This document shows positions 17,812-60,128 of a stretch of DNA of 64,000 bases, in pieces; positions within the stretch are counted from its first letter, which is position 1; each line of letters starts with the position of its first letter. The position numbers were made by a program, and so were the translations under genes. A model generated the notes under the pieces. That model saw nothing but the letters and a program-made list of their open reading frames with translations, ran no database searches and was not told where the DNA came from. This DNA is from Bugula neritina (taxonomy: Eukaryota > Animalia > Bryozoa): the NCBI GenBank assembly GCA_964035545.1, contig OZ037765.1:19716995-19780994 (forward strand), given 5' to 3'.

Positions 17812-18174
17812 ATTATATTATCCATTCGATATTTCTGTGAGGTATGTTGTCTGAAAGCCTGAGAAAGAGATTGCCATAAGTACCAATTGTAAATTCAACA
17901 ACAACTTTTGAATCTATACATATATACATGGTTTTGTGAAGAACATAATTTAATAATCAAACAAATATAGAACAGTGAAATATCTGATTGCTGGAAAAAA
18001 GCTAGAAACTCATTACAATGACAATACATAATAGGTTATCAGAGTGTTCAAAGATAAAAGGTGCTTATATAAAAATTTAGAAAAGGGTAAAGAACTAAAA
18101 TTTGCTTGCTAAGTAAGTAAACACATTGTCCAGCAATAAAATACAGCACTATCGAACTAACTACATTTATATAT

Positions 18175-18481
18175 TGTTATGATTTTCAGAATTAGGGTTG
18201 ATATGCTATCCAGAGAGTCTGATTACTTGCTATAGAACTGCACCAGGATAAGTCGAGTGAACGAGTATATATTTTAAACACAATAATACATTACAAAAAC
18301 GATACAAATACATTTGACAATTTCACACATCTAAACTATTCAGCACTCTAACTTCGACTAACTAACAGCGAGAAACTACTACTGCTGCTAACTATCAAAA
18401 CCGCTAATTGGCTATCAATTGTTCCGGGTCAATTACGCGACCCTGTATACTGTGCTGCTGGTAGCTCCACGAGCCACCACA
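18175..18481 (-). repeat. Gypsy 3' LTR
   Basis: Direct repeat of 25370-25676; preceded on the minus strand by a G-rich PPT-like GGTGGGGGCGG. Confidence 0.96.
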
Positions 18482-18769
18482 CCGCCCCCACCAGCAGAAA
18501 GCCCTCTTTCTGATATAAAAAATATTTCTTCATTACCCACATACATCAGTAGACAAAATTGGAAAAAGACAATATATAAGATATACAATAACAGACAGAG
18601 TTATTATAACAGCAGGCTACATACAATTGGCCAGCTATAGAGGAGGAATACCGGCTAGCTGTGGTATTGGACAAAGAGTCGAACTGTCGAGCAGTCGAGC
18701 ATTTACACGATAGTCTTGGGTCTCCCAAGAGGACGAAGTTGTGGATTATTCCGGGCAACAGAACCAGAG

Positions 18770-19551
18770 TCAGTGTTGGGCACGCCGATGTTTGGCTTGG
18801 CATGTACGTAGCTTCCGTTTAATCCGACCCACCGATCCTTTTAGTTGGAAGAGCCCCGTCGTAGTATTAAGCAGATCCGGTGCTAACTGGGTAAATTCCT
18901 CTTGCAGGCGGAGGAGACGTTCCTCTACTGTGGCCAGGCGAGCAGGGTCTGGGGACGGTGTCCGTCTGCGGCGCAGAGGGGGACTGGGAGACCTGGTTCG
19001 ACTCTTCGTCGGGGTAGGGGAGACTTCTCCTTCTTCGGGATAGGAAAACTCTTCGGGGGTGTACGCGATCTGAGGGCGGTCAGATACCAATGGAGATTGT
19101 TGCCTGGCATAGTCTAGTACGCGCTGGAAACCTGAGGTCAGGACGGCTAACAGCATCGCCTTCTTTACTAGGGGTCGTATCAGAGTTAAAAATTCTGGAT
19201 AGAGTTTGGCATCCACCACGTAATTCTCTCCGGAGAAACAGCCCGTCGCTCGATGTCTGGTGACGGGGTAGGGATAGACATCATTGTATCCACAGGGGCA
19301 GAATGTGAGTAAGAGATGGGCGTTGACATGTAGCTTCAAGGAGCGGTGAGAGGCACACTCTTCGTCACAAATCTGGCACCGCGTCCGTCCTCTGGACCCC
19401 CAGGCCGTTTCTATCTGCTCCTCTGTTTCCGGCGACACCCACCGCCAACGGCGGCGCAGTGGCTCGGGCCGGTCACCATTGGCATACTCCTCAGGATGCG
19501 GAGCGGGAAGTGCTCTATCCCGTACCCTGGTTGTAACGGGTCGAGTGTAAT
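18770..19551 (-). CDS. Gypsy accessory ORF3: zinc-finger / RS-P-rich / coiled-coil protein, probably spliced to the first 14 gag codons (274 aa)
   Basis: Intact ORF with no ATG near its 5' end. Motifs CQIC-x12-H-x3-H and CPC-x12-H-x4-C, RSPSPPLRRRRTPSP, and a heptad-like C-terminus. TACTAAC branch point (19577-19571) plus TTTTTCAG acceptor, in phase with a gag donor at 25294. Confidence 0.8.
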
Positions 19552-19865
19552 CTGAAAAAGTTTCAACAGTGTTAGTATAATACACTGCCGTGTTGTCAGC
19601 TTGAACAGCCTGGCAACTTCTCGTTCAGTTACCTCGTAGAGATTTATGGTAGTGAATAGTCAGATAGAACACGTATTGCAATGAGATTATAAAATCTCTA
19701 AGTCAAACTGAGTTCTTACTACGGTAGTTCACTAACCTATCTCCAGCTCAATTGACTCAGTGAGTCGGAGCTGAGCGATGCAATCTAGTTTCCATATTAA
19801 GATATAGTTAACTCACCCCACGATCTGTTGTCGTAAGACATACTTAATTTGTGAAATGGTTTGAA

Positions 19866-22800: not shown

Positions 22801-24434
22801 CCGAAGGGCAACACCTTCCACTTCCACAAACCGTCCCGTGTGATAAACGCCGCTTTCTCCTGGGCGTCGGGACTCAGAGGAACTTGCCAATAGCCACTCA
22901 GCAAGTCTAATGTGCTGAAGTACTTGCTGCCGGCTAGGGCGTCCAATGACTCGTCAATACGAGGTAGAGAGTAGGCGTCCTGTATGGTTACGCTATTGAG
23001 TTTGCGGTAATCCACACAGAACCGCCAACTGCCGTCTTTCTTCCGGACCAGTACGACCGGCGAGCTCCACGCACTATGGGCGGGCTCTATGAGGCCGCGG
23101 TCCAGAAGATCTCGTACTTGTCGGCTAACCTCCTTCTCTTTTTCCGGCCCCAGCCTGCGTGTGGGTTGCCGGACAGGGACTGTCCCTGCAGTCAGCGGTA
23201 TTTCGTGTCTGACAACTCCAGTCAGCCCCACGTCATGATCTCCGCTGCTGAACACATCAGCGTAGTCGCGTAGCAACTTCGCCATAGCTTGGCGTTCTTT
23301 GTTGCTCGCGCAGCCGCCACAGGCTGTGTCATACAACTCCCGGAGATGTGCTGGGACTGTCCCTCGCCTTTGCGTAGGGCACCGAGGGAATGCCTCCGTC
23401 GCATCACCCAGCGACGGGCCCACGTCCTCCTCTTGAACAGAGTGAAAACGGCCCAGCATAGACCCAGCCGGAAGCTTGACAGACTCGGTAAAGGGGTTGA
23501 CGCACTGCACTAAGATCTCCCCTTGCTCAGTCAGCTGATTCAGACTGCTGGCAAGTTGGATCCTTTCGTGCGCGCCTTCAACTACCCCGAGTCCAGAGAT
23601 CCGGCTATTGTTCACCCTGCAGTGAATGGTAGCCCGGGAGCGGCCTGGTATGGTACAGTTGCGTACCACCTGCACACCTCTCACTAAAGGGCGGCCGAAC
23701 TTGTCGACGCAGGCGAGTTCTCGCCCGGACATCACCATCGCAGATTTACTAAAATCGATGTGACATCCGTGCCGTTTTAGGAATGGCATCCCGAGGATGG
23801 CGTCCTCCTTGAGCTGACTGACGATAAACGTCTCTTGGATCGTTTGATCATGGACTCATCCCGTCAGCTCAATTATACCATAGAAGGGAAGGCATGACCC
23901 GTCAGCTAGGGTGCCATACTCCCCCTCGTATGGTTCCATCTCGCCCCTGACCCTAGCACTGAGGGTGTCGAAAAGTTGGCGGCTTAAGAGGTTCGTGGTA
24001 CAGCCCGAATCAATGAGGAAAGTAACAGCTTTGCCCTCCAGTTTACCGGGCAAGAAATAGCTGTTCCCATGGGGCTGTACCTGAACTCTCTCTTCAGGCC
24101 TTACTCTCGCAGGGAGTACCTCCCTCGCTTTGGGTCGCGAAGGAGGTCTCTTGGGATGGTGGTAAGTGGGCCTCGGAGGTGCCGAGGCTAGATTTCCGGC
24201 TACCTTTGTTGGCTCCCATCCAGATTCTTGGGCTGGTAGCCCTTCGAATCGATTGTGGAGGGGCATGGAAAAGGTAGCGGCGGGGCGGATCCCCTTGCTG
24301 GTCCGTCGCGGCTGTTGCCACTGTTGGTTGCCAGTACGCGGTACCCGTCTGGGTGACCTGTGTTTCTTCTTCTCTGGAGGTTTCATCGTCGGCCCGCAGG
24401 AGGTGGGAACATCTGCGGGCCGCGGTAGTTTAAC
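19866..24434 (-). CDS. pol: Gypsy Pol polyprotein (protease-RT-RNase H-integrase), interrupted by one in-frame TGA at 23858-23856
   Basis: Protease LIDSG; RT LPFGL..AP and YLDD; RNase H TDAS; integrase HHCC, DDE (DLVGP, HSDQG, ERNNR) and GPY motif. ORFs 23856..24494 and 19866..23789 are in the same frame. Confidence 0.95.
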
Positions 24435-25336
24435 CCCGGAGTTAGGAAGGGACAGTACCTGCGAAAATGTCCTTGATTTCCGCATTCCCAGCAAAAACTG
24501 ACCGTTTCCCCCGGTGGCGGCGCCGGTGGCCGTACGGGCTCAGCGGCGGTACCTACTGGGGTTTGGGGTGTCAGTGTTGCTATCAGTTTGGCCAGCATGT
24601 CTGTCAGTTGAGTGACTTTCGATGCTGTCGCTAACTGAGCCACAGCAGCCGTGGCGGAGGTTTCCTCCTCTCGTCCCGCTGCCGTGTCCGCGCGGTCTAC
24701 CTCCACTTGACGGGAGCTCCCGCGACTTTTATGCATTTGATTTGCTAGGAGGTAAGCTTTCCCCTCTGTAAGAGCATCCTCAACGGTGGTGACTCCCCTA
24801 GCTAAAAACTGGTGGTGGAGACCCAGATCGTCGACAGATGCTATGAAAGCGTCGAGGGTATACCTCTCGCGGTTGACTGGGGGCAAGTCGCTGTATGCGA
24901 TCTGTGCCAGCTTCATGACCGCGGCGGCATGTTCCCGCAACGGGGTGCGGGGATCACGCCGCAACCTCTGCAATCGGGCCCGGGCATCTGTAGCAGAGAG
25001 GCCGAAGCGGGCCCGCAGAGAAGCAAAGATATTATCGATGTCTACGCCCAGCCCATAAGGCTTGGCTTTGTCCATCAATGCCATTCTAAGCTTCAGCAGG
25101 GCCACCCTAGGGGGCCACTGGGCGACGTCCATTGCGTCGCTAAACTCTTGGATGAATTGCTCCACCTCCTCTTCGCCCGTGAAGGTGGGCGCCTTTAACC
25201 GGTAGCGGTCTTCAGTTAGTTCTCGCGGAACCCTTCGCTCTTCTACTACATGGTTAACAGGCATTGTCTCTACAGCATTGTCTCTAGGCTCACCTTCTAC
25301 TCCCGGTGGTTGCATTCCAGCATTTTCAGTCTCCAT
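24383..25336 (-). CDS. gag: Gypsy Gag (317 aa)
   Basis: Begins just after the PBS; capsid-like PTFTGEEEVEQFIQEF and CCHC knuckle CWECGNQGHFRRYC. Confidence 0.93.
   Translation of the reverse strand: METENAGMQPPGVEGEPRDNAVETMPVNHVVEERRVPRELTEDRYRLKAPTFTGEEEVEQFIQEFSDAMDVAQWPPRVALLKLRMALMDKAKPYGLGVDIDNIFASLRARFGLSATDARARLQRLRRDPRTPLREHAAAVMKLAQIAYSDLPPVNRERYTLDAFIASVDDLGLHHQFLARGVTTVEDALTEGKAYLLANQMHKSRGSSRQVEVDRADTAAGREEETSATAAVAQLATASKVTQLTDMLAKLIATLTPQTPVGTAAEPVRPPAPPPGETVSFCWECGNQGHFRRYCPFLTPGLNYRGPQMFPPPAGRR
24390..24434 (-). promoter_or_regulatory. Candidate -1 ribosomal frameshift signal (gag-pol)
   Basis: G_TTA_AAC in the gag frame, a 5-nt spacer, then a perfect 10-bp GC-rich stem CGGCCCGCAG/CTGCGGGCCG with a 13-nt loop. 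pol is in the -1 frame. Confidence 0.75.
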
Positions 25337-25350
25337 CTTGGATGTGCACT

Positions 25351-25368
25351 ATCCCACTGCTGCCACCA
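25351..25368 (-). promoter_or_regulatory. Primer binding site, tRNA-Leu type
   Basis: TGGTGGCAGCAGTGGGAT lies 1 nt from the 5' LTR and is complementary to a tRNA-Leu-like 3' end (ATCCCAC.GCTGCCACCA). Confidence 0.85.
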
Positions 25369-25369
25369 C

Positions 25370-25676
25370 TGTTATGATTTTCAGAATTAGGGTTGATATG
25401 CTATCCAGAGAGTCTGATTACTTGCTATAGAACTGCACCAGGATAAGTCGAGTGAACGAGTATATATTTTAAACACAATAATACATTACAAAAACGATAC
25501 AAATACATTTGACAATTTCACACATCTAAACTATTCAGCACTCTAACTTCAACTAACTAACAGCGGGAAACTACTACTGCTGCTAACTATCAAAACCGCT
25601 AATTGGCTATCAATTGTTCTGGGTCAATTACGCGACCCTGTATACTGTGCTGCTGGTAGCTCCACGAGCCACCACA
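25370..25676 (-). repeat. Gypsy 5' LTR
   Basis: Direct repeat of 18175-18481, followed on the minus strand by the PBS. Confidence 0.96.
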
Positions 25677-26795
25677 ATATTGCATTAAAAAGCAATTCTT
25701 ATTTTGATAAAAAGATTCAAAACAAATAGTACAGATGGCGTTATACACATTGGGTATTAATTTTTAGCAAGATACCATGTTAATTAATTTTCTTTTGGGT
25801 TATGCAGAACAACAATCATTATGATAAAAGCAGGATTAGGCTAAATTTTATTAATGCAAGATATATAATACTGTATGTTTCAATTAACAGGCAGTGAACT
25901 TAATGTCAGACATTGACATGGGCATCTTATAGTTTTGATTTATTTTGAAGATTAAAAACTTATCTGTATTTTTATTGTTAATAGTTATCTATATTCTGTC
26001 TCCTGGAAATATCTAACGCTAAGAAAATACATTGTCCATGAACTGAAACATGTCATAATTATATACTAACATCGTCACACTTGGTAGAGTTGCAATAATA
26101 AGTATCCTGGTTATTGATAATCTCTTATATGATATATAGTGTATTGCTTAAGAGCTGTGGGTTTGATTACATCACTTCCTCTAGACATTATAAAAGTCTG
26201 TACTGATTGTAAGTTGCATATTTGACGCAAATTTTGTTTAGCTGCATCACTCTTTATGTCTCAAGAAAGTCCAATTAACTGCCTGCCATTCATAAGCCAT
26301 CTTCAACTAAAACAAGTAGCATTTTATATATATAAAGTAAAGAACCGAAAGCTTCACTTTGATTTTCATCCTTGGTTTCAAGATTTTGAATTTTTTGATT
26401 GTTATTATCAAACCATATTTTTCGTAAAATTACTTTGATTTTCATTCTTTTAATCTTTGTCTTCAGGATTTTGAACTCTTTCTCTCCCCTTTTGTGATTG
26501 ATAATAATTGATTATTTCGAGTGTGAATTGTGTTATGCAGTTTAATTTTTATTTGTGTTCTCTACAACAATAGCAACGTTGTTGTTCGTTGAAAAATTAT
26601 AGTGAAAGTTTAGTGAACAGAGAGTTGGCACTGTGAGTACCTTTGGCCGTTTTGAACCAGTTGTTTAATTGATATCAGTCCCAAGTGTACGGAGTGAACA
26701 TACCTAATTATTAAATTTTTGTTGTTTTTTTTTCTTTCCTTTTTTGTTGATCACTAAACTTTCAATTATTTGTCAGGATACTGAAAAAATATAAC

Positions 26796-27695
26796 ATGCC
26801 TGGAGGAGCTAATAATAACAATAATGATAGTTCCTGTGGTGGTTGCAAGAGGAACATCAAAGGAGAATCAATCCAATGCAATGTTTGCACTCTGTGGTTT
26901 GATATTAAATGTTCAGATGTGGATAGTGCCACTGCAATTTTTTTGAAATCTCTTTCTGGCGAAAAGAGTTCAGTTCACTGGAACTGTTCCTCTTGTGAAA
27001 GTAGTTCAAAAAGGTTGCATGATATGATTGGTGCTGTTAATAACAGAGTGGCGCAGGTAGAATGTAAGATCAATGAGTTGAAACACTCTGTCACTTCCCT
27101 TGACACTACAGTTGAACATAGGATGGAAAGCGTAAGCCAGGATATAGACCATGCAGTGGCATCTATAAAAGCTGATTTTGATGTAGCTGTTGAAAACCAC
27201 AACAAAAAAATAGAGTGTGTTATGCAAGCTCGCCCCACCAATCTGGAGGAACACACCCGACTTGGGTCCAACTCCAGAAACAATAGAGCTAGTGAATCAG
27301 TTGTGACTCAGGTTGCTGGTGAGCTTAGAGAAAGACAAAAGCGAGCGTTAAATGTAGTATTCTCCGGAGAAGTAGTCAAAGACAAGATAACAAAGTTTTT
27401 AGAAGTAGCGAAGGTTGATCCTGCAACTAAAGTGCTTGAGATCACTACTAAACACAAAAAGATTATCTATATTGTCACGATGGACCAGGAAAAAGATAAA
27501 TGGACTGTAATTAGGAAAGCACGATCTATTAGCCTATCTACTGAGGGCTTGAAAAATATTTTTGTAAATCCTGATCTTATAAAAACTGAGCGAGAGGCAC
27601 AGTACTTGCTGAGACAGGAATTGAAAAGAAGGCGCCATGCAGTTAGGTGAAAGTGTTAAAATCAGTAAAGGAAAAGTTATTGAGGTTAGAAGTTA
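26796..27695 (+). pseudogene. LINE ORF1 (PHD finger, coiled coil), frameshifted near the C-terminus
   Basis: CGGC...CNVC.LWFD.KC...WNCSSC PHD-like motif; ERQKRALNVVFSG and IFVNPDL motifs typical of CR1/L2-group ORF1. Confidence 0.85.
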
Positions 27696-27746
27696 GAACG
27701 AGCAGAGGGAGACTAGACGGTGGAGAAAAACCTTACATTTAAACAA

Positions 27747-30462
27747 TGCAAATAAAAATGAATCTAGTTTCAAATTATGTTACTTAAATATATGATCACT
27801 TAGAAATAAAGTCACAGATTTAGAATTGGAGATTCAACAACACTCTAACATAGCTATTATCTGTTTAACAGAAACTTTCCTTAGCCCTGATATCAGTTCA
27901 GGAGAGCTGTCTTTACCTGGATATAATATTTTTCGTAAAAACAGAAACTAGCTAGAGGGGCGTTGCTGCCTATGTCCAATCAAAGTACAATGTTGATAAA
28001 ATTCCTATAACATCTCGAGCTGAATGCTTATTTCTAAAGATAGCTTCAGGTAGAGAAGTTCTCTTTATCTTGTTGGTCTATCGACCACCAAATAATATGG
28101 ACATAAATTTAATACCTGACCTACTTGACGAAATAAACAAAACTGTGCATAATTCAGAGAGCAAACTACTAATATGTGGTGACTTCAATCTCCCAAAGAT
28201 TGACTGACACAACTATAGAGCTACGGGCTCTTTTAAAATAACTAAACCCTTTTTAGCTAAAATTTCTGAACTTTACTTAGAACAACACATATATACACAC
28301 CTACTCATATCCATGGAAATACTTTAGACCTGCTTCTTACTAACAAATCAATAATTAAAAACATCTCACTAATAGATCCACACCTCAGTGATCATAATAT
28401 GATTCTGGCCACTTTAGAAACTAATCTTGATGCCAATTCTTCTCATATAACCAAAATTATCCACTTATATAATCAAACAGACTTTACTAACGCTCCAAAG
28501 ATCTCACTAAAATATGAAAACAAGATTAGCACTGCAATAAAACATAAATCAAACATTAATGATATCTACAATTTATTTCTGAGCCGCATAAAGGAACTTC
28601 GATTCACTTGTGTTTCTACAAAAACTGTTTGTGAGACTAAACATTCGCCATGGCTTAATAAAAACTTAAAAAAAGATTTATCAAAACAAAAAACACTTTA
28701 CAGCAAAATGAAACAGTCTCCTACTGAATATAACATACTTCGATTCCAAAAAACAAGAAAAACCAACAAAAAACTTATTAAATTAGCTAAAAAGTCTTAT
28801 CTAAACAGGATGTTATATAAACCACTGCAAAGTGGTAATAGCAAACCATTTTTTATATATATGAGAAAAATGAATGAAAACACTAAAAATACAATACCAG
28901 AACTAAAATATAATAATAAAGTAGCCAAAAGTGCTCAAGATAAAGCCAATACCTTAAATGAATTTTTTGAGCCCGTGTTCACACATGACGATGGTAAGAC
29001 AGTGAAACTGCTACAAAAATTTTCTGTAGATAATAGTGAAATAATAATAAATGAATCAGGTGTTAAAGAATTATTAATAAAAATCCATTCGAGCAAATCC
29101 TGTGGACCTGATAATGTAAGTGGAATATTACTAAAAACCTTTACCACTTATATAAGTGGTCATCTTACCAAGATATTCCATTATTCCATCAAAACAAACT
29201 CGATTCCAGATATCTGGAGAGTCGCCAAAATTACACCAGTTCACAAAAAAGGAGACAGACATATTCCCAATAATCACCGACCAATATCTCTTACATGTAT
29301 CCCTTGCAAACTTATAGAACACATCCTAGTGAGAGAGATAAATGCTCATTTGGAAAAACATATTATACTCACACCAGTACAACACAGTTTTAGAAAACAT
29401 AGGTCCTGTGAAACTCAGTTGGCGTATACCGCTAAAGAGTTATCTTTAAATATAGAACATGGTAGTATAACTGATCTTGTTGTTTTGGATTTTAGCAAGG
29501 CCTTTGATTCCATTAACCATAGAAAGTTGTTACAAAAATTATCAATGTATGGTATAAATTGCTTGATCTATTTATGGATTGAACAATTTTTGTCCTTTCG
29601 AAAGCAGTTTGTAATTGTGCACAATTCACCATCTAACGAGGTAAAAGTGATATCTGGTGTACCTCAAGGGTCGGTCCTGGGGCCTTTGCTCTTTCTTATC
29701 TATATTAACGACTTACCACTAGGTATCGACTCGCAGATCCGATTGTTTGCAGATGATGCATTGCTTTTCAATGTCAGAAAAAATAAAAATCAGCTACAAC
29801 AAGATCTAAACATCTTGGAGAAATGGTCCCATACCTGGCAGATGTGTTTTAATGCAGCCAAATGCTCAGTTATATCAGTTGGTGAAAAAAATTCTGATAT
29901 AATATATATTTTAAATAATACCAGATTAAGTAACGTAGAATCACATCCATATTTAGGTATTGAATTTAGTTATGACATGAAGTGGACCAATCATATAAAT
30001 AAAATAATAACCAATGCCTATAAAAACCTGGGAATGATAAAAAGAGTACTAAAATTTGCAGACACGAAAACTAAGCTTGTTGCATATTACAGTTTAGTGA
30101 GGTCAAAGTTGGAATATGGTTGTCAGGTGTGGAATCCTGTTTTAAAAAAAGATATTAAAATTATTGAAAAAGTTCAAAATAAAGCATTGCGTTTTATTTT
30201 TTCTATAAGATCACAAGTAAGCTACAGTAATCTGCGAGAAGCCACGGGAATTAAATCTATGAAAGACCGTGAAAAAGAATTGCGGCAAAAACTATTTTTC
30301 AAATGTATAGAAAATAATTTAATAAATCAAGGATATGTCGCTCCACAACCTCCAATTAATACCAGACAACACTCGAAGTTTTTCTTGCCTGCAATATCTT
30401 CAAAAGTATATTTTCACTCTTTTTATCCTTGAACTACTAGAGAGTTGAGAGATGGAATTTAG
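27747..30462 (+). pseudogene. LINE ORF2 (AP endonuclease + reverse transcriptase), disrupted
   Basis: ICLTETFL, GDFN, LDLLLTN, SDH, LDFSKAFD, GVPQGSVLGP, LFADD. Stops and frameshifts in the endonuclease part and a late TGA at 30430. Confidence 0.92.
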
Positions 30463-30665
30463 GCTAGAGTGTTGGTTTTTAAATATTTTTACTTACATTT
30501 TACTACGAAACCCTATAACTAAAGAAAAATAAAATAAAATAAATGAACGATCTAATATAAAAAAAGAGTATATACGTATTATATGCATATATTATGTATA
30601 TGCATATATCGAGTTTCCATGCATTCACCCTCCAAAGGTTCTTAGTGGGAAACTCTCCCAAACTG

Positions 30666-30777
30666 AAAGGATCTTCTAGCTTCTTGTGTTGCCAATAGCT
30701 CATGCACCCCTTAGCTTTTTAAAAAGTATATCGACTATGGAAAAGATGAAGATAATAGAAATAGCACTAAACTGTAA
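30666..30777 (+). pseudogene. Orphan SLC5 exon-14 fragment (unit 2)
   Basis: KDLLASCVANSSCTP* copy of 14132-14243 with a premature TAG. Its 5' stub is at 26336-26354. Confidence 0.85.
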
Positions 30778-32257
30778 AATATCTAATTGCTTCAAGTTAT
30801 TGCTTAGTATATATTATTCATGTTGTCTGAATGTCGATATATTTATACTCATGTATACTAATTTATTTGTCTACACGAATTTGCAAGCTTTTAAAGAGAT
30901 ACATGAGCATTGGGGGCAGCTGGTAGCTGATGATTATATTATTAATCAAAATTCCACTGCATAGCTCATTGAAACAATTCTACTTACCCATATTGAATCT
31001 ATATACAACATATATATTACATTATTACTCTATCGTAAAATGTTCTGTTGCTGGGCATTTAGAGACAATAAGAAATGCATATATTGTTACTACTCAAAAC
31101 GAGGCCACTAAAAATTGAAAATATAAATTCTACTTCGATTTCAGTTTGATTCATTTACAAGCATTAAGAACTTTATGAATGACACCCACAATTGCACACA
31201 ATACTGTTATATAATATTGGGAGAACCATGAGTCACAATTAAAAGAGCAGATAACCCTAAATACTAAGACATGTAAGGGTGTATGAATAATTGTAGTATT
31301 TTTTGTAGTGTACTTTGCTTAGTCACTATTGCTATTAGAAACATTTGGTCTTGTAGATTGAGTTACCAAAAACACTAGAGATTGTAATTACACTTTCAGT
31401 TTAATTGTAATATATCTAAAGTTTATGTATTACATTATAGCCAGTCTATTTAACTAAATGGCACAGTATCTGTAATTTCTCCATAAATCAGGGTGTAAAA
31501 TATGCTATATTCTATGCTTATATATTTTACATATAAGCATGCTAGATACCATAGCCATAAGATGCTGAGACTATTTTCTGCTATAGTGCTTTCAAATTTC
31601 TACGAGTAGCCTACTGGCCAGGTTTCATAAATAAGTGAATTCAGTTTTTGTCAATTAAGTAGCCTTGGCGAGCTTATTTCTCAAAGCAATGCACCTTGGC
31701 AGCCAAAAGCATTTCGTATAGGGATATAATGCGCAAAATCAATCAAGTGAGGCATATATGACTTTCACCTTGCATTGTTTACAGGCATTGGCATTTTTCA
31801 TATAGCATTAGGTTGTAACTAGAAACTATTTTTGTAACCATATTAGTCTTGTTATTCCAAGTTTTATCAGGTGATTTCCAAAAACATGTATTCTTATATT
31901 AAAAAAAGGCGAACATTAATATTGTGACAAGTGTATAGCTTCTACCAGCTATTGAGTAAGACCTACAGTTACTCTTACAACTAGGGAATTCGAAAGCCCA
32001 CTTAATTATTATTTATTAACATATGTACTCCTTTAATAGACATTTTGCTATTACATGTTACTTAATTAAAACAAGAAGCTTTAATTAACTAAATACAGTT
32101 GTTTTATTCTTGCGAATGAATAGAAATCACACAAAATATTTAGAAACTGAAATTATCCTCACATATCAAGTTGAGAGAAATACGTTAATTGTTCAGAGAA
32201 TCATCAAAACGGTCGTGTCCAGGTCAATGGTTGGCATGCAGCTAAGCATTTTGGTTG

Positions 32258-32656
32258 TTACTTTATAATACTTCCATTAAAACCAGGGTAAGAATTTTCT
32301 CCGGAAGGCCTTGGCCTTCTATTTTTACCCTTAGCTTCTGTTACCGAAGCTGCCAGGATAGACATACAATAATTAGATCATTCAACAACATTTTTATAGG
32401 CTTTAATGACGTTAGTTATGTAATCAACTGCAAATATCATCATTATAACTATTTATACATAGTTTTTTGCAAAAGACATAGCTAGCAAATTAAAAGTTAA
32501 TGAGAAAATATACTGCTGTTTTAATACTCACTGAAAACAAAACTTTTAATTTAAAAAAACACCTTTTTTCTTCTAAATAATATTGAATGTAAGTTTCAAC
32601 TTACCAAATGCACTGAAGGCAATCATAGCAATCAAAGCAACGGCAAGAATCTTCAT
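32258..32656 (-). CDS. Secreted cationic peptide precursor, copy 2 (47 aa)
   Basis: Exons 32656-32605 and 32349-32258 give MKILAVALIAMIAFSAFASVTEA-KGKNRRPRPSGENSYPGFNGSIIK*. Splice sites, TATA (33397-33391) and AATAAA are retained. Confidence 0.88.
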
Positions 32657-35081
32657 ATTGAATTTGTATCTATAAATAATCGTTTGTTATATAAGATTTT
32701 AATAAAATTAAATGCATATAATTAGTGTGTATATTTTAAATATTTTTAAATTAATAATTTGCATAGTATTATATCTTTAAACATTTATTTTAATGTTAAA
32801 TAGACAATTTATTACCATTTATAAATTTTTCAATAACTGGTTTTGATATAAAAATAATTTTATAGACAAGTATGGGTTGCTGGGCGTTTAAAATGATTAA
32901 TTATGAAATTATTATTATCTGAATTAATATACAGTTCGATATATTGTAGCTACCTAGCTGCTATGAACTTCTAACTGTACTACAGAGTTCTAACTCAACT
33001 AAACCTATTAAACTTTTATTTGACCATTTTCTACTGCAAATCTTGTTGAAAGCTTTATTTTTTTGAACAATTTTCATGTCCTTATATGAAAAGAAATAAA
33101 CCTTTATCAGTTTTGTTGATGTCTGATTTCCGTTTGAATAAGTGAAAAAAGATTCAAGTGTGCAATTTATAAAGATAATTTTGTTTTTGAGCAATAAAAA
33201 GAATAAGAAAAAAATATATATAAATTTAATTATTATAAAAACGTTAATCTATAGGCACATTTGCAAATATATTCAAATCCTAGGTTCATGAAGTTTTATA
33301 ATATGTTGAACACATACCTGCGTCTGACAATGCTCAGAGGATATGAACACTATTGTAGTAATTGAATACAGCCACAGTCTTTATATATTATTTTATAGAC
33401 CATTTTTCAGACTTGAAGTGTCAAGTAGTTGTTAATTGATTGGCTAATAACTTTCAATAACGTCTTAGAAACATACAATGATAATGATATGTTTGTTAAT
33501 AATGATCAAGCCTCTCAACAGAAATGATTGATAAATTTTCAGTAACCTGCTATGATAAAACCTTTTTTAAGAGAGATAACAAAGCAGCACTAATAATTAT
33601 ATGGGAAACAATTGTGTTAAACATTAAACTAGGAATTTACTATTGGATCAACTGTTTTTATTTTTCTATATCTATTCAATATAGTGGTCTTACAACTGTG
33701 CTGTTATGCTAAAGGTTTGACTACACACCAAAATCCAGTATAAAAATCCCAAAATATAGTGCAATAACTATAATGCATTTGCTAACCATGCAGCCATGTT
33801 CTGATTTAAGTTGTGGTGTTCAAACATAATTTAATTTAAAAAACTGAGATGGGTGTTCGTTTTTTCCAGTAGTCACAATTTAAGAAGTGCGTTTTCAAAT
33901 GTTCTTGTTACCTTAATTACAGCTGTAGCATTTTATGGTTCTTGGAGTTAAAGTGGAAAAGTACTTTTCCACTTTAACGTATCAGTCTTATAATTTTGAA
34001 AAAATCATTAATGTATAAATGGTTATCTTTAGAATAATAAATAAACTTCTTCAAATGTTCATAGAAAAATTGTCTTGATTATTTCTTCAATATTATATTA
34101 TCCATACGGTATTTCTGTGAAGTACAATGTTGTTTGAACGTGAAAAAGTGATTGCCATAAGTACCAATTGTAAATTAAACAAAAACTTTTGAATCTATAC
34201 ATAAATACATGGTTGTGGGAAGTACATAATTTAATAATCAAACAAATATAGAACAGGAAAATATTTGATTGCTGGAATAAAGCTAAAAAAACTCATTACA
34301 ATGACAAAACATAATAGGTTATCAGAGTGTAAAAAAATTTAGAAAAAGGTAAAAAACTAAAATATGCTTGCTAAGTAAGTAAACACATTGTCCAGCAATA
34401 AATTACAGCACTATCTAACTAACTACATTTATATATTGCATTACAAATATTTCCTTATTTTGATAAAAAGATTCAAAACAAATAGCAAAGACGGCGTTAT
34501 ACACATTGGGTATTAATTTTTAGGTCAGTAGGCATGTTATTAGCAAGATACCATGTTAATTAATTTTCTTTTGGGTTATGCAGAACAACAATCATTATGA
34601 TAAAAGTAGGATTAGACTAAATTTTATTAATGCAAGATATATAATACTGTATGTTTCAATTAACAGGCAGTGAACTTAATGTCAGACATTGACATAGGCA
34701 TCTCATAGTTTTGATTTATTTTGAAGATTAAAAACTTATCTGTATTTTTATTGTTAATAGTTATTTATATTCTGTCTCCTGGAAATATCTAACGCTAAGA
34801 AAATACATTGTCCATAAACTGAAACATATCATAATTATATACTAACATCGTCACACTTGGTAGAGTTGCAACAATAAAGAACTGTGGGTTTGATTACATC
34901 ACTTCCTCTAGACATTATAAAAGTCTGTACTGATTGTAAGTTGCATATTTGACGCACATTTTGTTTAGCTGCATCACTCTTTATGTCTCAAAAAAGTCCA
35001 ATTAACTGCCTGCCATTCATAAGCCATCTTCAACTAAAACAAGTAGCATTTTATATATATAAAGTAAAGAATCGAAAGTTT

Positions 35082-38000
35082 CACTTTGATTTTCATCTTT
35101 GGTTTCAAGATTTTGAATTTTTTGATTGTTATTATCATACCATATTTTTCGTAAAATTACTTTGATTTTCATTCTTTTAATCTTTGTCTTCAGGATTTTG
35201 TACTCTTTCTCTCCCTTTTTGTGATTAATAATAATTGATTATTTCGAGTGTGAATTGTGTTACGCATTTTAATTTTTATTTGTGTTCTCTACAACAATAG
35301 CAACGTTGTTGTTTGTTGAAAAATCATAGTGAAAGTTTAGTGAACAGAGAGTTGGCACTGTGAGGACCTTTGGCCATTTTGAGCCAGTTGTTTAATTGAT
35401 ATCAGTCCCAAGTGTACGGAGTGAACATACCTATTAATTAAATTTTTGTTGTTTTTTTTTCTTTCCTTTTTTGTTGATCACTAAACTTTCAATTATTTGT
35501 CAGGATACTGAAAAAATATAACATGCCTGGAGGAGTTAATAATAATAATAATGATAGCTCCTGTGGTGGTTGCAAGAGGACCATCAAAGGAGAATCAATC
35601 CAATGCAATGTTTGCACTCTGTGGTTTGATATTAAATGTTCAGGTGTGGATAGTGCCACTGCAATTTTTTTGAAATCTCTTTCTGGCGAAAAGAGTTCGG
35701 TTCACTGGAACTGTTCCTCTTGTGAAAGTAGTTCAGAAAGGTTGCATGATATGATTAGTGCTGTTAATAACAGCGTAAGCCAGGATATAGACCATGCAGT
35801 GGCATCTATAAAAGCTGATTTTGATGTATCTGTTGAAAACCTCAACAAAAAAATAGAGTGTGTTATGCAAGCTCGCCCCACCAATCTGGAGGAACACACC
35901 CGACTTGGGTCCAACTCCAGAAACGATGGTTATCCCAATAGAGCTAGTGAATCAGTTGTGACTCAGGTTGCTGGTGAGCTTAGAGAAAGACAAAAGCGAG
36001 CCTTAAATATAGTATTCTCCGGAGAAGTAGTCAAAGACAAGATAACAAAGTTTTTAGAAGTAGCGAAGGTTGATCCTGCAACTAAAGTGCTTGAGATCAC
36101 TACTAAACACAAAAAGAATATCTATATTGTCACGATGGCCCAAGAAAAGGATAAATGGACTCTAATTGGGAAAGCACGATCTATTAGCTTATCTACTGAG
36201 GGCTTAAAAAAATATTTATGTAAATCCTGATCTTACAAAAACTGAGCGAGATGCACAATACTTGCTGAGACAGGAATTGAAAAGAAGGCGCCAGTTAGGT
36301 GAAAGTGTTAAAATCAGTAAAGGAAAAGTTATTGAGGTTAGAAGTTAGAACAAGCAGAGTGATACTAGACGGGGAGAAAAACCTTACATGTAAACAATGC
36401 AAATAAAAATGAATCTAGTTTCAAATTATGTTACTTAAATATACGATCACTTAGAAATAAAGTCACAGATTTAGAATTGGCGATTCAACAACACTCTAAC
36501 ATAGCTCTTATCTGTTTAACAGAAACTTTTCTTAGCCTTGATATCAGTTCAGGAGAGCTGTCTTTACCTGGATATAATATTTTTCGTAAAGACAGAAACA
36601 TAGCTAGAGGGGCGTTGCTGCCTATGTCCAATCAAAGTACAATGTTGATAAAATTCCTATAACATCTCGAGCTGAATGCTTATTTCTAAAGATAGCTCCA
36701 GGTAGAGAAGTTCTCTTTATCTTGTTGGTCTATCGACCACCAAATAATATGGACATAAATTTAATACCTGACCTACTTGACGAAATAAACAAAACTGTGC
36801 ATAATTCAGAGAGCAAACTACTAATATGTGGTGACTTCAATCTCCTAAAGATTGACTGACACAACTATAGAGCTACGGGCTTTTTTAAAATCACTAAACC
36901 CTTTTTAGCTAAAATTTCTGAACTTTACTTAGAACAACACATATACACACCTACTCATATCCATGGAAATACTTTAGACCTGCTTCTTACTAACAAATCA
37001 ATAATTAAAAACATCTCACTAATAGATCCACACCTCAGTGATCATAATATGATTCTGGCCACTTTAGAAATTAATCTCGATGCCAATTCTCCTCATATAA
37101 CCAAAATTATTCACTTATATAATCAAACAGACTTTACTAACGCTCCAAAGATCTCACCAAAAATATGAAAACAAGATTAGCATTGTAATAAAACATAAAT
37201 CAAACATTAATGATATCTACAATTTATTTCTGAGCTGCATAAAGGAACTTCGATTCACTTGTGTTCCTACAAAAACTGTTTGTGAGACTAAACATTCACC
37301 ATGGCTTAATAAAAACTTAAAAAAAGATTTATCAAAACAAAAAACACTTTACAACAAAATGAAATGGTGTCCTACTGAATATAACATACTTCGATTCCAA
37401 AAACAAGAAAAACCAACAAAAAACTTATTAAATTAGCTAAAAAGTCTTATCTAAACAGGATGTTATATAAACCACTGCAAAGTGGTAATAGCAAACCATT
37501 TTTTATATATATGAGAAAAATGAATGAAAACACTAAAAATACAATACCAGAACTAAAATATAATAATAAAGTAGCCAAAAGTGCTCAAGATAAAGCCAAT
37601 ACCTCAAATGAATTTTTTGAGTTCGTGTTCACACATGACGATGGTAAGACAGTGAAACTGCCACAAAAATTTTCTGTAGATAATAGTGAAATAATAATAA
37701 ATGAATGAGGTGTTGAAGAATTATTAATAAAAATTGATTCGAGCAAATCCTGTGGACCTGATAATGTAAGTGGAATATTACTAAAAACCTTTACCACTTA
37801 TATAAGTGGTCATCTTACCAAGATATTCCAATATTCCATCAAAACAAACTCGATTCCAGATATCTGGAGAGTCGCCAATATTACACCAGTTCACAAAAAA
37901 GGAGACAGACATATTCCCAATAATCACCGACCAATATCTCTTACATGTATCCCTTGTAAACTTATAGAACACATCCTAGTGAGAGAGATAAATGCTCATT

Positions 38001-39309
38001 TAGAAAAACATAATATACTTACACCAGTACAACATGGTTTTAGAAAACATAGGTCCTGTGAAACTCAGTTGGCGTATACCGCTAATGAGTTGTCTTTAAA
38101 TATAGAACATGGTAGTATAACTGATCTTGTTGTTTTGGATTTTAGTAAGACCTTTGATTCCGTTAACCATAGAAAGTTGTTACAAAAGTTATCAATGTAT
38201 GGTATAAATTGCTTAATCTATTTATGGATTGAACAATTTTTGTCCTTTCGAAAGCAGTTTGTAATTGTGGACAATTCACCATCTAACGAGGTAAAAGTGA
38301 TATCTGGTGTACCTTAAGGGTCGGTCCTGGGGCCTTTGCTCTTTCTTATCAACGACTTACCACTAGGTATCGACTCGCAGATCCGATTGTTTGCAGATGA
38401 TGCATTGCTTTTCAATGTCAGAAAAAATAAAAATCAGCTACAACAAGATCTAAACACCGTGGAGAAATAGTCCCATACCTGGCAGATGTGCTTTAATGCA
38501 GCCAAATGCTCAGTTATATCAGTTGGTAAAAAAAATTCTGATATAATATATACTTTGAATAATACCAGATTAAGTAACGTATAATCACATTCATATTTAG
38601 GTATTGAATTTAGTTATGACATGAAGTGGTCCAATCATATAAATAAAATAATAACCAATGCCTATAAAAACCTGGGAATGATAAAAAGAGTACTAAAATC
38701 TGCAGACACAAAAACTAAGCTTGTTGCATATTACAGTTTAGTGAGGTCAAAGTTGGAATATGGTTGTCAGGTGTGGGATCCTGTTTTGAAAAAAGATATT
38801 AAAATTATTGAAAAAGTTCAAAATAAAGCATTGCGTTTTATTTTTTCTATAAGATCACAAGTAAGCTACAGTAATCTGCGAGAAGCCACGGGAATTAAAT
38901 CTATGAAAGACCGTCAAAAAGAATTGCGGCAAAAACTATTTTTCAAACGTATAGAAAATAATTTAATAAATCAAGGATATGTCGCTCCACGACCTCCAAT
39001 TAATACCAGACAACACTCGAAGCTTTTCTTGCCTGCAATATCTTCAAAAGTATATTTTCACTCTTTTTATCCTCGAACTACTAGAGAGTTGAGAGATGGA
39101 ATTTAGGCTAGAGTGTTGGTTTTTAAATATTTTTACTTACATTTTACTACGAAACCCTATAACTAAAGAAAAATAAAATAAAATAAATGAACGATCTAAT
39201 ATAAAAAAAGAGTATATACGTATTATATGCATATATTATGTATATGCATATATCGAGTTCCCATGCATTCACCCTCCAAAGGTTTTTAGTGGGAAACTCT
39301 CCCAAACTG
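35082..39309 (+). mobile_element. CR1/L2-group LINE, copy 2 (segmentally duplicated, more decayed)
   Basis: Same insertion junctions and shared lesions as copy 1. ORF1 from 35523 has an in-frame deletion and a frameshift; ORF2 is broken by several extra stops. Confidence 0.93.
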
Positions 39310-39421
39310 AAAGGATCTTCTAGCTTCTTGTGTTGTCAATAGCTCATGCACCCCACAGCTTTTTAAAAAGTATATCGACTATGGAAAAGATGAAGATGAT
39401 AGAAATAGCACTAAACTGTAA
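39310..39421 (+). pseudogene. Orphan SLC5 exon-14 fragment (unit 3)
   Basis: KDLLASCVVNSSCTPQLFKKYIDYGKDEDDRNSTKL* directly after the LINE 3' end. Confidence 0.85.
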
Positions 39422-40903
39422 AACATCTAATTGCTTCAAGTTATTGCTTAGTATATATTATTCATGTTGTCTGAATGTGGATATATTTATACTCATGTAT
39501 ACTAATTTATTTGTCTACACGAATTTGCAAGCTTTTAAAGAGATACATGAGCATTGGGGGTAGCTGGTATAGCTGATGATTATATTATTAATCAAAATTC
39601 CACTGCATAACTTATTGAAAAAATTATACTTACCCATATTGAATCTATATACAACATATATATTACATTATTACTCTATCGTAAAATGTGCTGTTGCTTG
39701 TATTTAGAGACAATAAGAAATGCATATATTGTTACTACTCAAAACGAGGCCAGTAAAAATTGAAAATATAAATTCTACTTCAATTTCAGTTTGATTCATT
39801 TACAAGAACTTTATGAATGGCACACACAATTGCACACAATACTGTTATATAATATTGGGAGAACCAGGAGTCACAATTAAAAGAGCAGATAACCCTGAAT
39901 ACTAAGACATGTAAGGGTGTATGAATAATTGTAGTGTTTTTTGTAGTGTACTTTGCTTAGTCACTATTGCTATTAGAAACATTTGGTCTTGTAGATTGAG
40001 TTACCAAAAACACTAGAGATTGTAATTACACTTTCAGTTGAATTGTAATATATCTAAAGTTTATGTATTACATTATAGCCAGTCTATTTAACTAAATGGC
40101 ACAGTATCTGTAATTTCTCCATAAATCAGGGTGTAAAATATGCTATATTCTATGCTTATATATTTTACATATAAGCATGCTAGATACCATAGCCATAAGA
40201 TGCTGAGACTATTTTCTGCTATAGTGCTTTCAAATTTCTACGAGTAGCCTACTGGCCAGGTTTCATAAATAAGTGAATTCAGTTTTTGTCAATTAAGTAG
40301 CCTTGGCGAGCTTATTTCTCAAAGCAATGCACCTTGGCAGCCAAAAGCATTTCGTATAGGGATATAATGCGCAAAATCAATCAAGTGAGGCATATATGAC
40401 TTTCACCTTGCATTGTTTACAGGCATTGGCATTTTTCATATAGCATTAGGTTGTAACTAGAAACTATTTTTGTAATCATATTAGTCTTGTTATTCCAAGT
40501 TTTATCAGGTGATTTCCAAAAACATGTATTCTTATATTAAAAAAAGGCGAACACTAATATTGTGACAAGTGTATAGCTTCTACCAGCTATTGAGTAAGAC
40601 CTACAGTTACTCTTACAACTATAGGGAATTCGAAAGCCCATTTAATTATTATTTATTAACATATGTACTCCTTTATTGGATTTTTTTGCTATTACATGTT
40701 ATACTTAATTAAAACAAGAAGCTTCAATTAACTATATAAATACAGTTGTTTTATTCTTGCGAGTGAATAGAAATCACACAAAATATTTAGAAACTGAAAT
40801 TATCTTCAAGTATCAAGTTGAAAGAAATACGTTAATTGTTCAGAGAATCATCAAAACGGTCTGTCCAGGTCAATGGTTGGCATGCAGCTAAGCATCTTAG
40901 TTG

Positions 40904-41302
40904 TTACTTTTTAATACTTCTATTCCAAACAGGGTAAGAAATTTCTCTGGGAGGCCTTGGCCTTCTATTTCTAATGATAGCTCCTGTTACCGAAGCTGCC
41001 AGGATAGACATACAATAATTAGATCATTCAACAACATTTTTATAGGCTTTAATGACGTTAGTTATGTAATCAACTGCAAATATCATCATTATAACTATTT
41101 ATACATAGTTTTTTGCAAAAGACATAGCTAGCAAATTAAAAGTTAATGAGAAAATATACTGCTGTTTTAATACTCACTGAAAACAAAACTTTTAATTTAA
41201 AAAAACACTTTTTTTCTTCTATATAATATTGAATATAAGTTTCAACTTACCAAATGCACTGAAGGCAATCATAGCAATGAAAGCAATGGCAAGAACCTTC
41301 AT
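40904..41302 (-). CDS. Secreted cationic peptide precursor, copy 3, divergent mature peptide (47 aa)
   Basis: Exons 41302-41251 and 40995-40904 give MKVLAIAFIAMIAFSAFASVTGA-IIRNRRPRPPREISYPVWNRSIKK*. Frame, length and splice sites are conserved. Confidence 0.88.
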
Positions 41303-43705
41303 ACTGAATTTTGTATCTATAAATAATTGTTTGTTATATAAGATTTTAATAAAATTAAATGCATATAATTAGGGTGTATATTTTAAATATTTTTAAATCA
41401 ATAAATTGCATACTGTTATATCTTTAAACATTTATCTTAATGTTGAATAGACCACTTATTACCATTTATAAATTTTTCAACAACTAATTTTGATATAAAA
41501 ATCATTTTTATAGACAAGTATGGGTTGCTGGGCGTTTAAAATGATTAATTATGAAATTATTATTATCTGAAGTAATATACAGTTCGATATATTGTAGCTA
41601 CCTAGCTGCTATGAACTTCTAACTGTACTACAGAGTTCTAACTCAACTAAACCTATTAAACTTTTATTTGAACATTTTCTTTCACAAATCTTTTTGAAAG
41701 CTTTAATTTTTTTTGAGCAATTTTCATGGCCTTGTATGAAAAGAAATAAACCTCTATAGTTTTTTTGATGTCTGATTTCCGTTTGAATAAGTGAAAAAAA
41801 ATTTCAAGTATGCTATTTATAAAAATAATTTTGTTTTTTAGCAATAAAAAGAAGTTAAGAAAAAATATATAATATAAATTTACCTATCATAAAAAAGTTA
41901 ATCTATAAGCAAATTTGCAAATATATTCAAATCCTAGGTTCATAAAGTTTTATAATATGTTGAACAGCACATACCTGGGTCTGACAATGCTCAGAGTATA
42001 TAAACACTATTGCAGTATAAATTGAATACAGCCACAGCCTTTATATATTATCTTATAGACCATTTTTTAGACTTGAAGTGTCAAGTAGTTGTTAATTGAT
42101 TGGCTAATAACTTTCAATAACGTCTTAGAAACATACAATAATAGTGATATGTTTGTTAATAACAATCACGCCTTTCAATAGAAATGATTGATAAATTTTC
42201 AGTAACCTGCTATGATAAAACCTTTTTAGGAGAGATAACAAAGCAGCACTAATAATTGTATGGGAAACACTTGTGTTAAATATTAAACTAAGTTTACTAT
42301 TGGACCAACTGTTTTTATTTTTCTATCTCTATTCAATATAGTGGTCTTACAACTGTGCTGTTATGCTAAAGGTTTGACTACACACATAAAACCAGCATAG
42401 AAATCCAAAAACATAGTGAAATAACTATAACGCATTTGCTAACCGTGCAACCATGTTCTGATTTAAGTTGTGGTGTCCAAACATAATTTAATTTAAAAAA
42501 ACTCAGATAGGTGTTCGTTTTCAAGTAGTCACATTTAAGAAGTGCGTTTTCAAATGTTCTTGTTACCTCAATTACAGCTGTAGCATTTTATGCTTCTTGG
42601 AGTTAAAGTGGAAAAGTATCAGTCTTATAATTTTGAAAAAAATCATTAACGTATAAATGGTTATCTTTAGAATTATGAAGAAACTTGTTTCAGATGTTCA
42701 TATAAAAAATTCTTGATTTTTTCTTTAACATCATATTATCCATACGATATTTCTGTGAAGTATGTTGCTTGAACGCGTGAGAAAGAAATTGCCATAAGTA
42801 ACAAGTGTAAATTCAACAAAAACTTTTAAATCTATACTTAAATACATGTTTGTGGGAAGCACATAATTTAATAATCGAAAAAATATAGAACAGGGAAATA
42901 TTTGATTGCTGGAAAAAAGCTAAGAAACTCATTACAATGACAAAACATAATAGGTTATCAGAGTGTTCAAAGGTAAAAGGTACTTACACAAAAATTTAGA
43001 AAAGAGTAAAAAACTAAAATTTGCTTGCTAAGTAAGTAAACACATGGTCCAGCAATAAAACACAGCACTATCAAACTAACTACATTTATATATTGCATTA
43101 CAAAACAATTCTTATTTTGATAAAAAGATTTGAAGAAAATAGTACAGATGGCGTTATACACATTGGGTATTAATTATTAGCAAGATACCATGTTAATTAA
43201 TCTTCTTTTGGGTTATGCAGAACAACAATCATTATGATAAAAGCAGGATTAGGCTAAATTTTATTAACGCAAGATATATAATACTGTATGTTTCAATTAA
43301 CAGGCAGTGAACTTGATGTCAGACATTGACATAGGCATCTTGTAGTTTGATTTATTTTGAAAATTAAAAACTTATCTGTATTTTTATTGTTAATAATTAT
43401 TTATATTCTGTCTCCTGGAAATATCTAACGCTAAGAAAATACACTGTCCATAAACTGAAACATGTCATAATTATATACTAACATCGTCACACTTGGTAGA
43501 GTTGCAATAATAAGTATCCTGGTTATTGATAATCTCTTATATGATATATAGTGTATTGCTTAAGAACTGTGATTACATCACTTCCTCTAGACATTATAAA
43601 AGTCTGTACTGATTGTAAGTTGCATATTTGACGCACATTTTGTTTAGCTGCATCCCTCTTTATGTCTCAAAAAAGTCCAATTAACTGCTTGCAAAATTGA
43701 GTAGC

Positions 43706-44267: not shown

Positions 44268-44637
44268 ATGAAGGTTCTAGCTGTTGCTTTGATAAGTTGA
44301 AACTTATATTCAATATTATATAGAAGAAAAAAGGTGTTTTTTAAATTAAAAGTTTTGTTTCTAGTGAATAGCCTACTAAAACAATAGTATATTTTACTAT
44401 ATCGTTTGCAGAAAACTATGAATAAATAACTATCTTATAGTGTTACAGTGTGTGTGTGCCATATGGCATGATTACGTAATTATCTTCTGTGAAACTTATA
44501 AAATTGTTGCCAAATAGTTAAATTATTGTAGGTCTGTTTTGGAAGTAATAGAAGCTGCTTGTAGCAGTAGAAAAGGAAGCACGCTGTCTCCCAGAAGAAT
44601 GTCAGGATCCTTTTGAGATAGATATGTTGGCAAGTAG
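44268..44637 (+). pseudogene. Inverted, divergent pseudogene of the peptide family (copy 4)
   Basis: TTTATAG acceptor, then ATG AAG GTT CTA GCT GTT GCT TTG ATA AGT TGA (a deletion removes half the signal peptide and the donor). Homologous intron follows, then a second-exon remnant ..IEA-ACSSRKGSTLSPRRMSGSF*DRYVGK*. Inverted homology to the unit core spans ~44200-45850. Confidence 0.8.

Positions 44638-46316: not shown

Positions 46317-60128
<13,812 letters not shown>

Follow-up and report, generated by a model that had tools for sequence, protein, structure and literature searches.

Replacement-rich divergence of the mature exon in a tandemly duplicated gene for a putative secreted cationic peptide of the bryozoan Bugula neritina

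The window analysed in this study, the whole stretch of 64,000 nucleotides at 19.72-19.78 Mb on contig C1 of Bugula neritina, is AT-rich (about 30% GC) and contains a peptide gene in three intact copies together with one broken, inverted copy. The genome assembly comprises 216.00 Mb in 320 scaffolds plus the mitochondrion, with 9 chromosomes (PMC11480708). The gene consists of two exons, a 52-nt signal exon and a 92-nt exon 2, separated by a 255-nt phase-1 intron. The repeat units that carry the copies are in tandem and about 8.65 kb long each, and, measured from copy 3, the other two tandem copies are 8.6 and 25.2 kb further left. The features, given in positions of the window, are listed below.

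41302-41251, minus strand: copy 3 exon 1, 52 nt, coding for the signal-peptide h-region MKVLAIAFIAMIAFSAF plus one base
40996-41250, minus strand: copy 3 intron, 255 nt, phase 1, GTAAGT...CAG, with 3 substitutions against copy 2
40995-40904, minus strand: copy 3 exon 2, 92 nt including TAA, coding for (A)SVTGA, with which the signal peptide ends, and for the mature peptide IIRNRRPRPPREISYPVWNRSIKK of 24 residues
40750-40755, minus strand: AATAAA polyadenylation signal of copy 3, about 148-149 nt past the stop codon, at an equal offset in copies 1 and 2
32258-32656, minus strand: copy 2 gene, with exon 1 at 32656-32605, exon 2 at 32349-32258 and the mature peptide KGKNRRPRPSGENSYPGFNGSIIK
15739-16137, minus strand: copy 1 gene, with exon 1 at 16137-16086, exon 2 at 15830-15739 and the same peptide as copy 2
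44268-44637, plus strand: copy 4, an inverted, older and broken paralogue, with its exon-2 homologue at 44546-44637
14132-26286, no strand assigned: repeat unit A, which holds copy 1, lacks the LINE and is interrupted by a Gypsy LTR retrotransposon
26150-34877, no strand assigned: repeat unit B with copy 2 and a LINE whose reverse-transcriptase ORF (28399-30432) is intact
34877-43692, no strand assigned: repeat unit C with copy 3, about 8.65 kb, with a decayed LINE on the left and the gene and its upstream region on the right

Copies 1, 2 and 3 have one architecture, with frames, splice donor and splice acceptor all intact, and a TATATAA box is located upstream of the gene in each of them. According to the gene model, the precursor is 47 residues long and is composed of a 23-residue signal peptide and a 24-residue mature peptide, which is Cys-free, cationic and Arg/Pro-rich. 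By the A/T-x-A rule, the signal peptide is probably cleaved after such a motif. Copies 1 and 2 encode ASVTEA followed by KGKNRRPRPSGENSYPGFNGSIIK, and copy 3 encodes ASVTGA followed by IIRNRRPRPPREISYPVWNRSIKK; the stop codon of copy 1 is TGA where copy 2 has TAA. The copy 3 peptide has a net charge of +7, with 6 Arg and no Gly, and the copy 1/2 peptide has a net charge of +5, with 4 Gly. Pro makes up 3/24 residues in copies 1 and 2 and 4/24 in copy 3, and there is one RPRP(P) unit. Two replacements in exon 1 (V>I and L>F) are private to copy 3.

Neither peptide form matched any family in a Pfam search, and an Rfam search across the window gave no match. When the 39-residue open frame around exon 2 was compared with 1.84 billion representative proteins, only a low-complexity false match was obtained, and a metagenome scan using the conserved 3'UTR block returned no match.

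The repeat array is a mosaic. The left part of unit B is nearest to unit C, its gene region is nearest to unit A, and the conflicting sites include 4 that group copies 2 and 3 and 2 that group copies 1 and 3, which indicates that exchange between units has occurred and could have homogenised the flanks. Simple unit trees, (A,(B,C)) and ((A,B),C), were both tried and neither fits the whole unit, the signals being mixed. Several other elements were observed in the window. The Gypsy LTR retrotransposon in unit A (18175-25676) has a GC content of about 55%, 307-nt LTRs that are 99% identical and, on the minus strand, an intact pol ORF of 1307 residues with reverse transcriptase, RNase H and integrase. 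The LINE-type element of the duplicated unit is located at 26796-30432 (plus strand) in unit B and at 35523-39106 (plus strand) in unit C; its ORF1 has a weak PHD-like match, its reverse-transcriptase ORF of 677 residues is intact in unit B, and the unit C copy is fragmented into shorter ORFs. To the right of the array there are a perfect hexanucleotide microsatellite of about 550 nt at 47268-47820, with a GC skew of -0.39 in its 2-kb bin, and a tandem array of about 11 units with a 19-nt period (38-nt higher order) at 48345-48553. On the left of the array, an older duplication without the peptide gene joins 1-2983 and 11659-14457 with 83-88% identity and 11.6-kb spacing.

Exon 2 of copy 3 was compared with that of copies 1 and 2, which are identical to each other, and 14 base differences in 11 codons were counted, all 14 of which change the residue. 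The mature region (72 nt, 24 codons) holds 13 of them in 10 codons, and the recount agreed exactly with the replacements listed in the preliminary description, which had reported 13 differences in 10 codons and no synonymous change. The 14th difference, E>G, lies at position -2 relative to the probable cleavage site of the signal peptide. Using the Nei-Gojobori method, exon 2 gave 14 nonsynonymous and 0 synonymous differences over 67 nonsynonymous and 20 synonymous sites, corresponding to a dN of 0.245 and a dS of 0. Among simulated sets of 14 random changes, zero synonymous codons occurred with p 0.04-0.07, a value that is weak by itself and comes from about 20 synonymous sites and one informative sequence pair. 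The differences include runs of neighbouring changes at 40974-40977 (AGGG/TCAT) and 40925-40926 (TT/GG), and such neighbours may each have arisen in one multi-base event. Exon length is preserved across the copies together with the core NRRPRP..E.SYP..N.S, as had been described. The intron of copy 1 differs from that of copy 3 by 7 substitutions and 2 one-base indels; the earlier figures were about 6 substitutions and 2 indels. The stretch of about 110 intron nucleotides beside the exon, described earlier as identical, was found to be 113 bases that are identical in copies 1, 2 and 3.

The exon was set against its non-coding background in a three-way alignment of the units, using the site pattern in which copy 3 differs from copies 1 and 2 and these two agree. 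The counts of this pattern in each compartment were as follows.

Exon 2: 14/92 (15.2%)
Upstream intergenic: 64/1631 (3.9%)
Gene-region non-coding: 16/601 (2.7%)
Left of gene: 11/1383 (0.8%)
Intron: 3/254

Exon 2 exceeds the fastest non-coding compartment about 4-fold (OR 4.4, p 3.5e-5) and the intron more strongly (14/92 vs 3/254, p 1.3e-6). With all three site classes counted, it has more differences than any other 92-nt window of the unit, 16 compared with 10 in the second-ranked one. In the pairwise comparison of copy 2 with copy 3 over 8.6 kb, exon 2 also ranks first, and non-coding windows reach 15 and 12 differences; the background is thus heavy-tailed. The intron, tried as a neutral yardstick, was rejected as misleading, since the remaining non-coding DNA of the unit is 3 to 10 times more divergent. 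Because the intron is unusually conserved, the contrast between exon and intron overstates the acceleration. It is possible that this conservation results from constraint or from conversion, either way. Between copies 2 and 3, a stretch of 213 nt of the intron (40996-41208) shows no difference, and the upstream intergenic DNA of the same units differs by 4-10%.

Copy 4 was exposed by self-comparison of the window, through an inverted match of 74% identity to the 3' flank of the gene; its 3'-flank homology extends to about 45053. Copy 4 has lost the splice donor and the last part of exon 1 to a 28-nt deletion, and the exon-2 homologue, which is 92 nt long with its stop at the same position as in the other copies, contains an in-frame TGA. 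Owing to the deletion and the in-frame TGA, copy 4 was regarded as a pseudogene. Its exon 2 was aligned ungapped in a single register and is identical to copy 3 at 51/92 positions and to copy 1 at 42/92, compared with a mean of 24 and a maximum of 40 for shuffled sequences and no more than 33 for alternative registers. Copy 4 was considered as a recent conversion donor for copy 3 and rejected, given the 51/92 identity and the sites it shares with copy 3 being interleaved with 36 copy-4-specific sites.

Copy 4, a pseudogene that is 45% different in exon 2, was then used as outgroup for the 14 sites that part copy 3 from copies 1 and 2. It agrees with copy 3 at 9 sites, with copies 1 and 2 at 1 and with neither at 4, which stay ambiguous, and the split of 9 to 1 over the 10 informative sites has a binomial p of 0.02. 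Flanking non-coding sites polarised in the same way are balanced, 7 to 6. On the branch of copies 1 and 2, 9/92 exon-2 sites changed vs 7/779 non-coding sites (p 7e-6), and 1 to 5 exon-2 sites changed on the copy 3 branch. Since 9 of the 10 informative sites are shared by copies 3 and 4, the burst is placed on the branch leading to copies 1 and 2. The outgroup comparison showed that most exon-2 changes arose there and that copy 3 is the conservative form. Two claims of the preliminary description are overturned by this polarity, namely that copy 3 is the diverged copy and that charge and hydrophobicity rose in it; with 9/10 sites on the other side, both properties fell in copies 1 and 2. In the derived form three Arg are gone (two replaced by Gly, one by Lys), as are one Pro, one Ile and one Val. 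The peptides of copies 1 and 2 are identical, while their flanks differ by 2-5%. Exon 2 is also faster in the comparison with copy 4 itself: where copies 1-3 all agree, copy 4 departs from them at 36/77 sites of exon 2 vs 153/687 non-coding sites, taken from the intron and both flanks (p 1e-5).

At least 20 loci in the genome share the 5'UTR, the signal exon and the beginning of the intron, with 76-91% nucleotide identity; for the signal exon by itself, identity across these loci is 78-91%. Copies 1-3 match L005-L012 and L019-L037 over the 5'UTR and exon 1, and at all matched loci exon 1 is 52 nt long and in the same phase (phase 1 at the GT donor). The Bugula signal-exon superfamily is defined here by an exon 1 of the MKVLAVAVIAMIAFSAL type together with an ASVAEA start of exon 2. 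Its loci are mostly on C9 at 4.31-4.67 Mb, and others are on C2, on C4 and elsewhere on C9. The superlocus at C9 4.31-4.67 Mb (L005-L010, L019-L021 and L026-L037) was observed to hold at least 15 genes with a common signal exon. The first 17 bases of exon 2 (ASVAEA) are common to the superfamily, and the mature parts are unrelated. Following the AG acceptor, exon 2 opens with (A)SV(A/T)(E/G)A: the chromosome-9 members have ASVAEA, copies 1 and 2 share ASVTEA, and copy 3 has ASVTGA. Copies 1-3 carry both the signal exon and the exon-2 start, the latter followed by a cationic part that runs to the stop codon.

Where exon 2 of a superfamily member was located, the mature part was cationic and either Gly/His-rich, Tyr/Lys-rich or of a six-cysteine type. 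The six-cysteine pattern C...CxxxC...C...CxC was found in paralogues in L007, L032, L035 and L036. In a profile search, the cysteine-rich members gave weak matches to scorpion K-channel toxins, nasonin-1 and arthropod defensin (best E 0.011), and PF14866 was matched below its curated threshold in 4/5 of them; a homologue search with the cysteine-rich paralogue exon found none. L035 compared with L032 and L036 has a dN/dS of 1.2-1.8, with 18% divergence in the exon vs 7-9% in the intron, and L032 compared with L036 has the opposite, conservative pattern. At L007 (G000:C9:4420917-4424018, minus strand), one signal exon is accompanied by two different cysteine-rich exons of the ASVAEA type, 391 and 1082 nt past the donor (L007:1006-1134 and L007:315-443). 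These two are either mutually exclusive alternative mature exons or one of them belongs to a second copy without its own exon 1.

The gene is best explained as a taxon-restricted gene in a tandem array, and we consider, with somewhat better than even confidence, that replacement-driven diversification of a secreted effector peptide is the most likely cause of the pattern in exon 2. Under this explanation, exon 2 would evolve through bursts of amino-acid replacement. Once separated from the copy 3 form, the line leading to copies 1 and 2 would have fixed at least 9 replacements in 24 codons, among them R>K, P>S, two R>G, I>N and V>G, changing about 11 times as fast as the non-coding flanks did on this branch. 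The new form would then have been duplicated unchanged, giving rise to copies 1 and 2, and copy 3 would retain the more ancestral, more cationic and more hydrophobic form. The replacements suggest positive (diversifying) selection as the cause, which had also been proposed in the preliminary description. That proposal is supported in so far as the replacement excess lies above every non-coding yardstick (4-11x) and is repeated in the copy 4 comparison (36/77 vs 153/687) and in the L035 lineage; it is weakened by a dS of 0 that was taken over only 20 sites and by the mosaic that exchange has left in the array. Defensin-like paralogues, the cationic composition and the RRPRP(P) stretch are the reasons for proposing a defence role, and the peptide is most likely a secreted host-defence or surface-interaction effector. 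The composition and the paralogues are likewise what the earlier phrase "host-pathogen arms race" is built on, and they would be consistent with it.

An alternative that we consider unlikely, but that has to be weighed seriously, is that exchange rather than selection on new mutations has produced the contrast, either by conversion from an old paralogue that is lost or unassembled, or by the persistence of old exon forms within homogenised flanks. In the former version, a tract of about 75-110 nt would have overwritten exon 2 before copies 1 and 2 parted, and in the latter, concerted evolution (unequal crossing-over or conversion) would have evened the intron and flanks. The mosaic array fits such a history, with unit B C-like on its left side and A-like near the gene and with conflicting shared-derived sites. 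So do the 14 differences in about 75 nt (19%), a value near the non-coding distance to copy 4 (about 22%), the sharp edges of the differences with the adjoining 113-nt block identical in all copies, and the further non-coding windows with 12-15 differences. However, a donor of this kind, an older distant paralogue as envisaged in the preliminary description, was absent from the 216-Mb assembly, in which DNA and protein searches found either exon-2 form in the three copies only. Neutral old divergence also leads one to expect about 3 synonymous differences, where 0 were observed (p 0.04-0.07), and a symmetric split of the polarised sites, where 9 to 1 was observed (binomial p 0.02), and an island of the exon that resists homogenisation would itself imply selection for two forms. 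It is less probable still that no selection for change was involved and that relaxed constraint, a local mutational hotspot or multi-nucleotide events left a cluster of changes in a short exon by chance, the absence of synonymous changes being sampling noise. A probability of 0.04-0.07 for no synonymous codon leaves some room for this, as do the adjacent multi-base changes at 40974-40977 and 40925-40926, which could have raised the count, the overdispersed background of the repeat unit and the decay of family members to pseudogenes as seen in copy 4. Relaxed constraint, however, cannot exceed the neutral rate, and exon 2 changed at 4 to 11 times the rate of every non-coding yardstick. The three frames are intact, the peptides of copies 1 and 2 are identical in spite of flanks that are 2-5% different, neither the core NRRPRP..E.SYP..N.S nor the exon length has changed, and the exon-specific excess appears again both with copy 4 and in the L035 lineage, all of which argues against an absence of selection for change.

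Units B and C might also be haplotypes of one locus that were misplaced in tandem, so that copies 2 and 3 would be alleles, and this we regard as very improbable. The divergence between units B and C is 3.7%, which is inside the range of heterozygosity in marine invertebrates. Haplotypic duplication had to be purged from this assembly (PMC11480708), which also speaks for misplacement. On the other side, the junction is seamless within a HiFi contig, the unit occurs three times, unit A is structurally distinct (without the LINE and with the Gypsy insertion), and the LINE reverse-transcriptase ORF is intact in unit B and the LINE is broken in unit C. The concentration of replacements in the exon stands even if B and C are haplotypes.

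The gene was also compared with known systems. Myticalins of Mytilus are linear cationic Pro/Arg-rich antimicrobial peptides (PMC5577615, PMC12294457), and they resemble the Bugula gene in being a lophotrochozoan, taxon-restricted and clustered multigene family (PMC12294457). Their mature peptides, 17-47 residues long, are Cys-free, Arg/Pro-rich and cationic, and these are hypervariable where the signal peptide is conserved. The coding sequence is interrupted by a phase-1 intron whose position is conserved as well, and many paralogues are pseudogenes. Of the systems compared, the myticalin family is the closest analogue of the Bugula peptide gene. Nevertheless, no sequence similarity to the Bugula peptide was found, and the Bugula model has two coding-region exons and no sign of a 5'UTR-only exon. 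Its precursor ends 24 residues past the signal peptide with no anionic C-terminal extension, its peptide is without PRX repeats, and its signal exon also serves cysteine-rich CSalphabeta, Gly/His-rich and Tyr/Lys-rich peptides. The combination of signal-peptide homology and an anionic C-terminal extension by which a myticalin is recognised was absent from the Bugula gene.

A conserved signal with a hypervariable mature region is also found in the precursors of amphibian skin antimicrobial peptides, in conotoxin superfamilies and in the salivary gland protein (SSGP) genes of the Hessian fly. In these genes, as in Bugula, the signal exon, introns and UTRs are more conserved than the mature region, and replacement-biased bursts follow tandem duplication. 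They belong to other phyla and have unrelated sequences, the Bugula gene is without an acidic pro-region, and the evidence from Bugula consists of 3+1 copies in one genome, as opposed to many species. A conserved signal exon and conserved non-coding parts around a hypervariable mature exon are a well-known general design, and the concentration of replacement in the mature exon is the usual signature of fast-evolving defence peptides.

Proline-rich antimicrobial peptides (PrAMPs) such as Bac7, PR-39, oncocin and apidaecin typically contain at least 25% Pro in repeated PRP or PxxP units and act on bacteria without lysis, through the ribosome exit tunnel or DnaK. The Bugula peptide is likewise Cys-free and cationic, and its RRPRP(P) near the N-terminus resembles the RPRPP of Bac7 and PR-39. 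It differs in that only 3-4 of its 24 residues are Pro and the PRP unit occurs just once, and it has a conserved N-x-S sequon and an SYP motif. Its composition therefore falls outside that of PrAMPs, and a link to them would be one of composition only. As for CSalphabeta defensins and scorpion-toxin-like peptides (PF14866; PDB 2rtz, 2kp0 and 2ru0), paralogues with the same signal exon carry C...CxxxC...C...CxC, with matches below the curated thresholds, whereas the Arg/Pro-rich peptide is Cys-free and cannot adopt the fold; the six cysteines of that class are absent from the peptide of copies 1-3.

Bugula is a model for symbiont-based chemical defence (bryostatins) and a major fouling organism. 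Among the titles and abstracts covered by a literature search, none described a gene-encoded antimicrobial peptide from a bryozoan. The locus is a compact natural experiment, in which two peptide forms that differ at 10/24 residues are placed in near-identical settings with a known direction of change, and both forms are open to synthesis and direct comparison. The correction of polarity matters for such a comparison, the Gly-rich and less cationic form of copies 1 and 2 being the derived one. A broader possibility, which we put forward tentatively and hold to be somewhat doubtful, is that B. neritina has a previously undescribed, phylum-restricted effector system, in which one signal exon would serve as a chassis for unrelated mature exons and the mature exon alone would be renewed by adaptive bursts or exon replacement, with introns and UTRs kept unusually constant. 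If this is true, the chassis system would provide the first gene-encoded antimicrobial peptides from Bryozoa.
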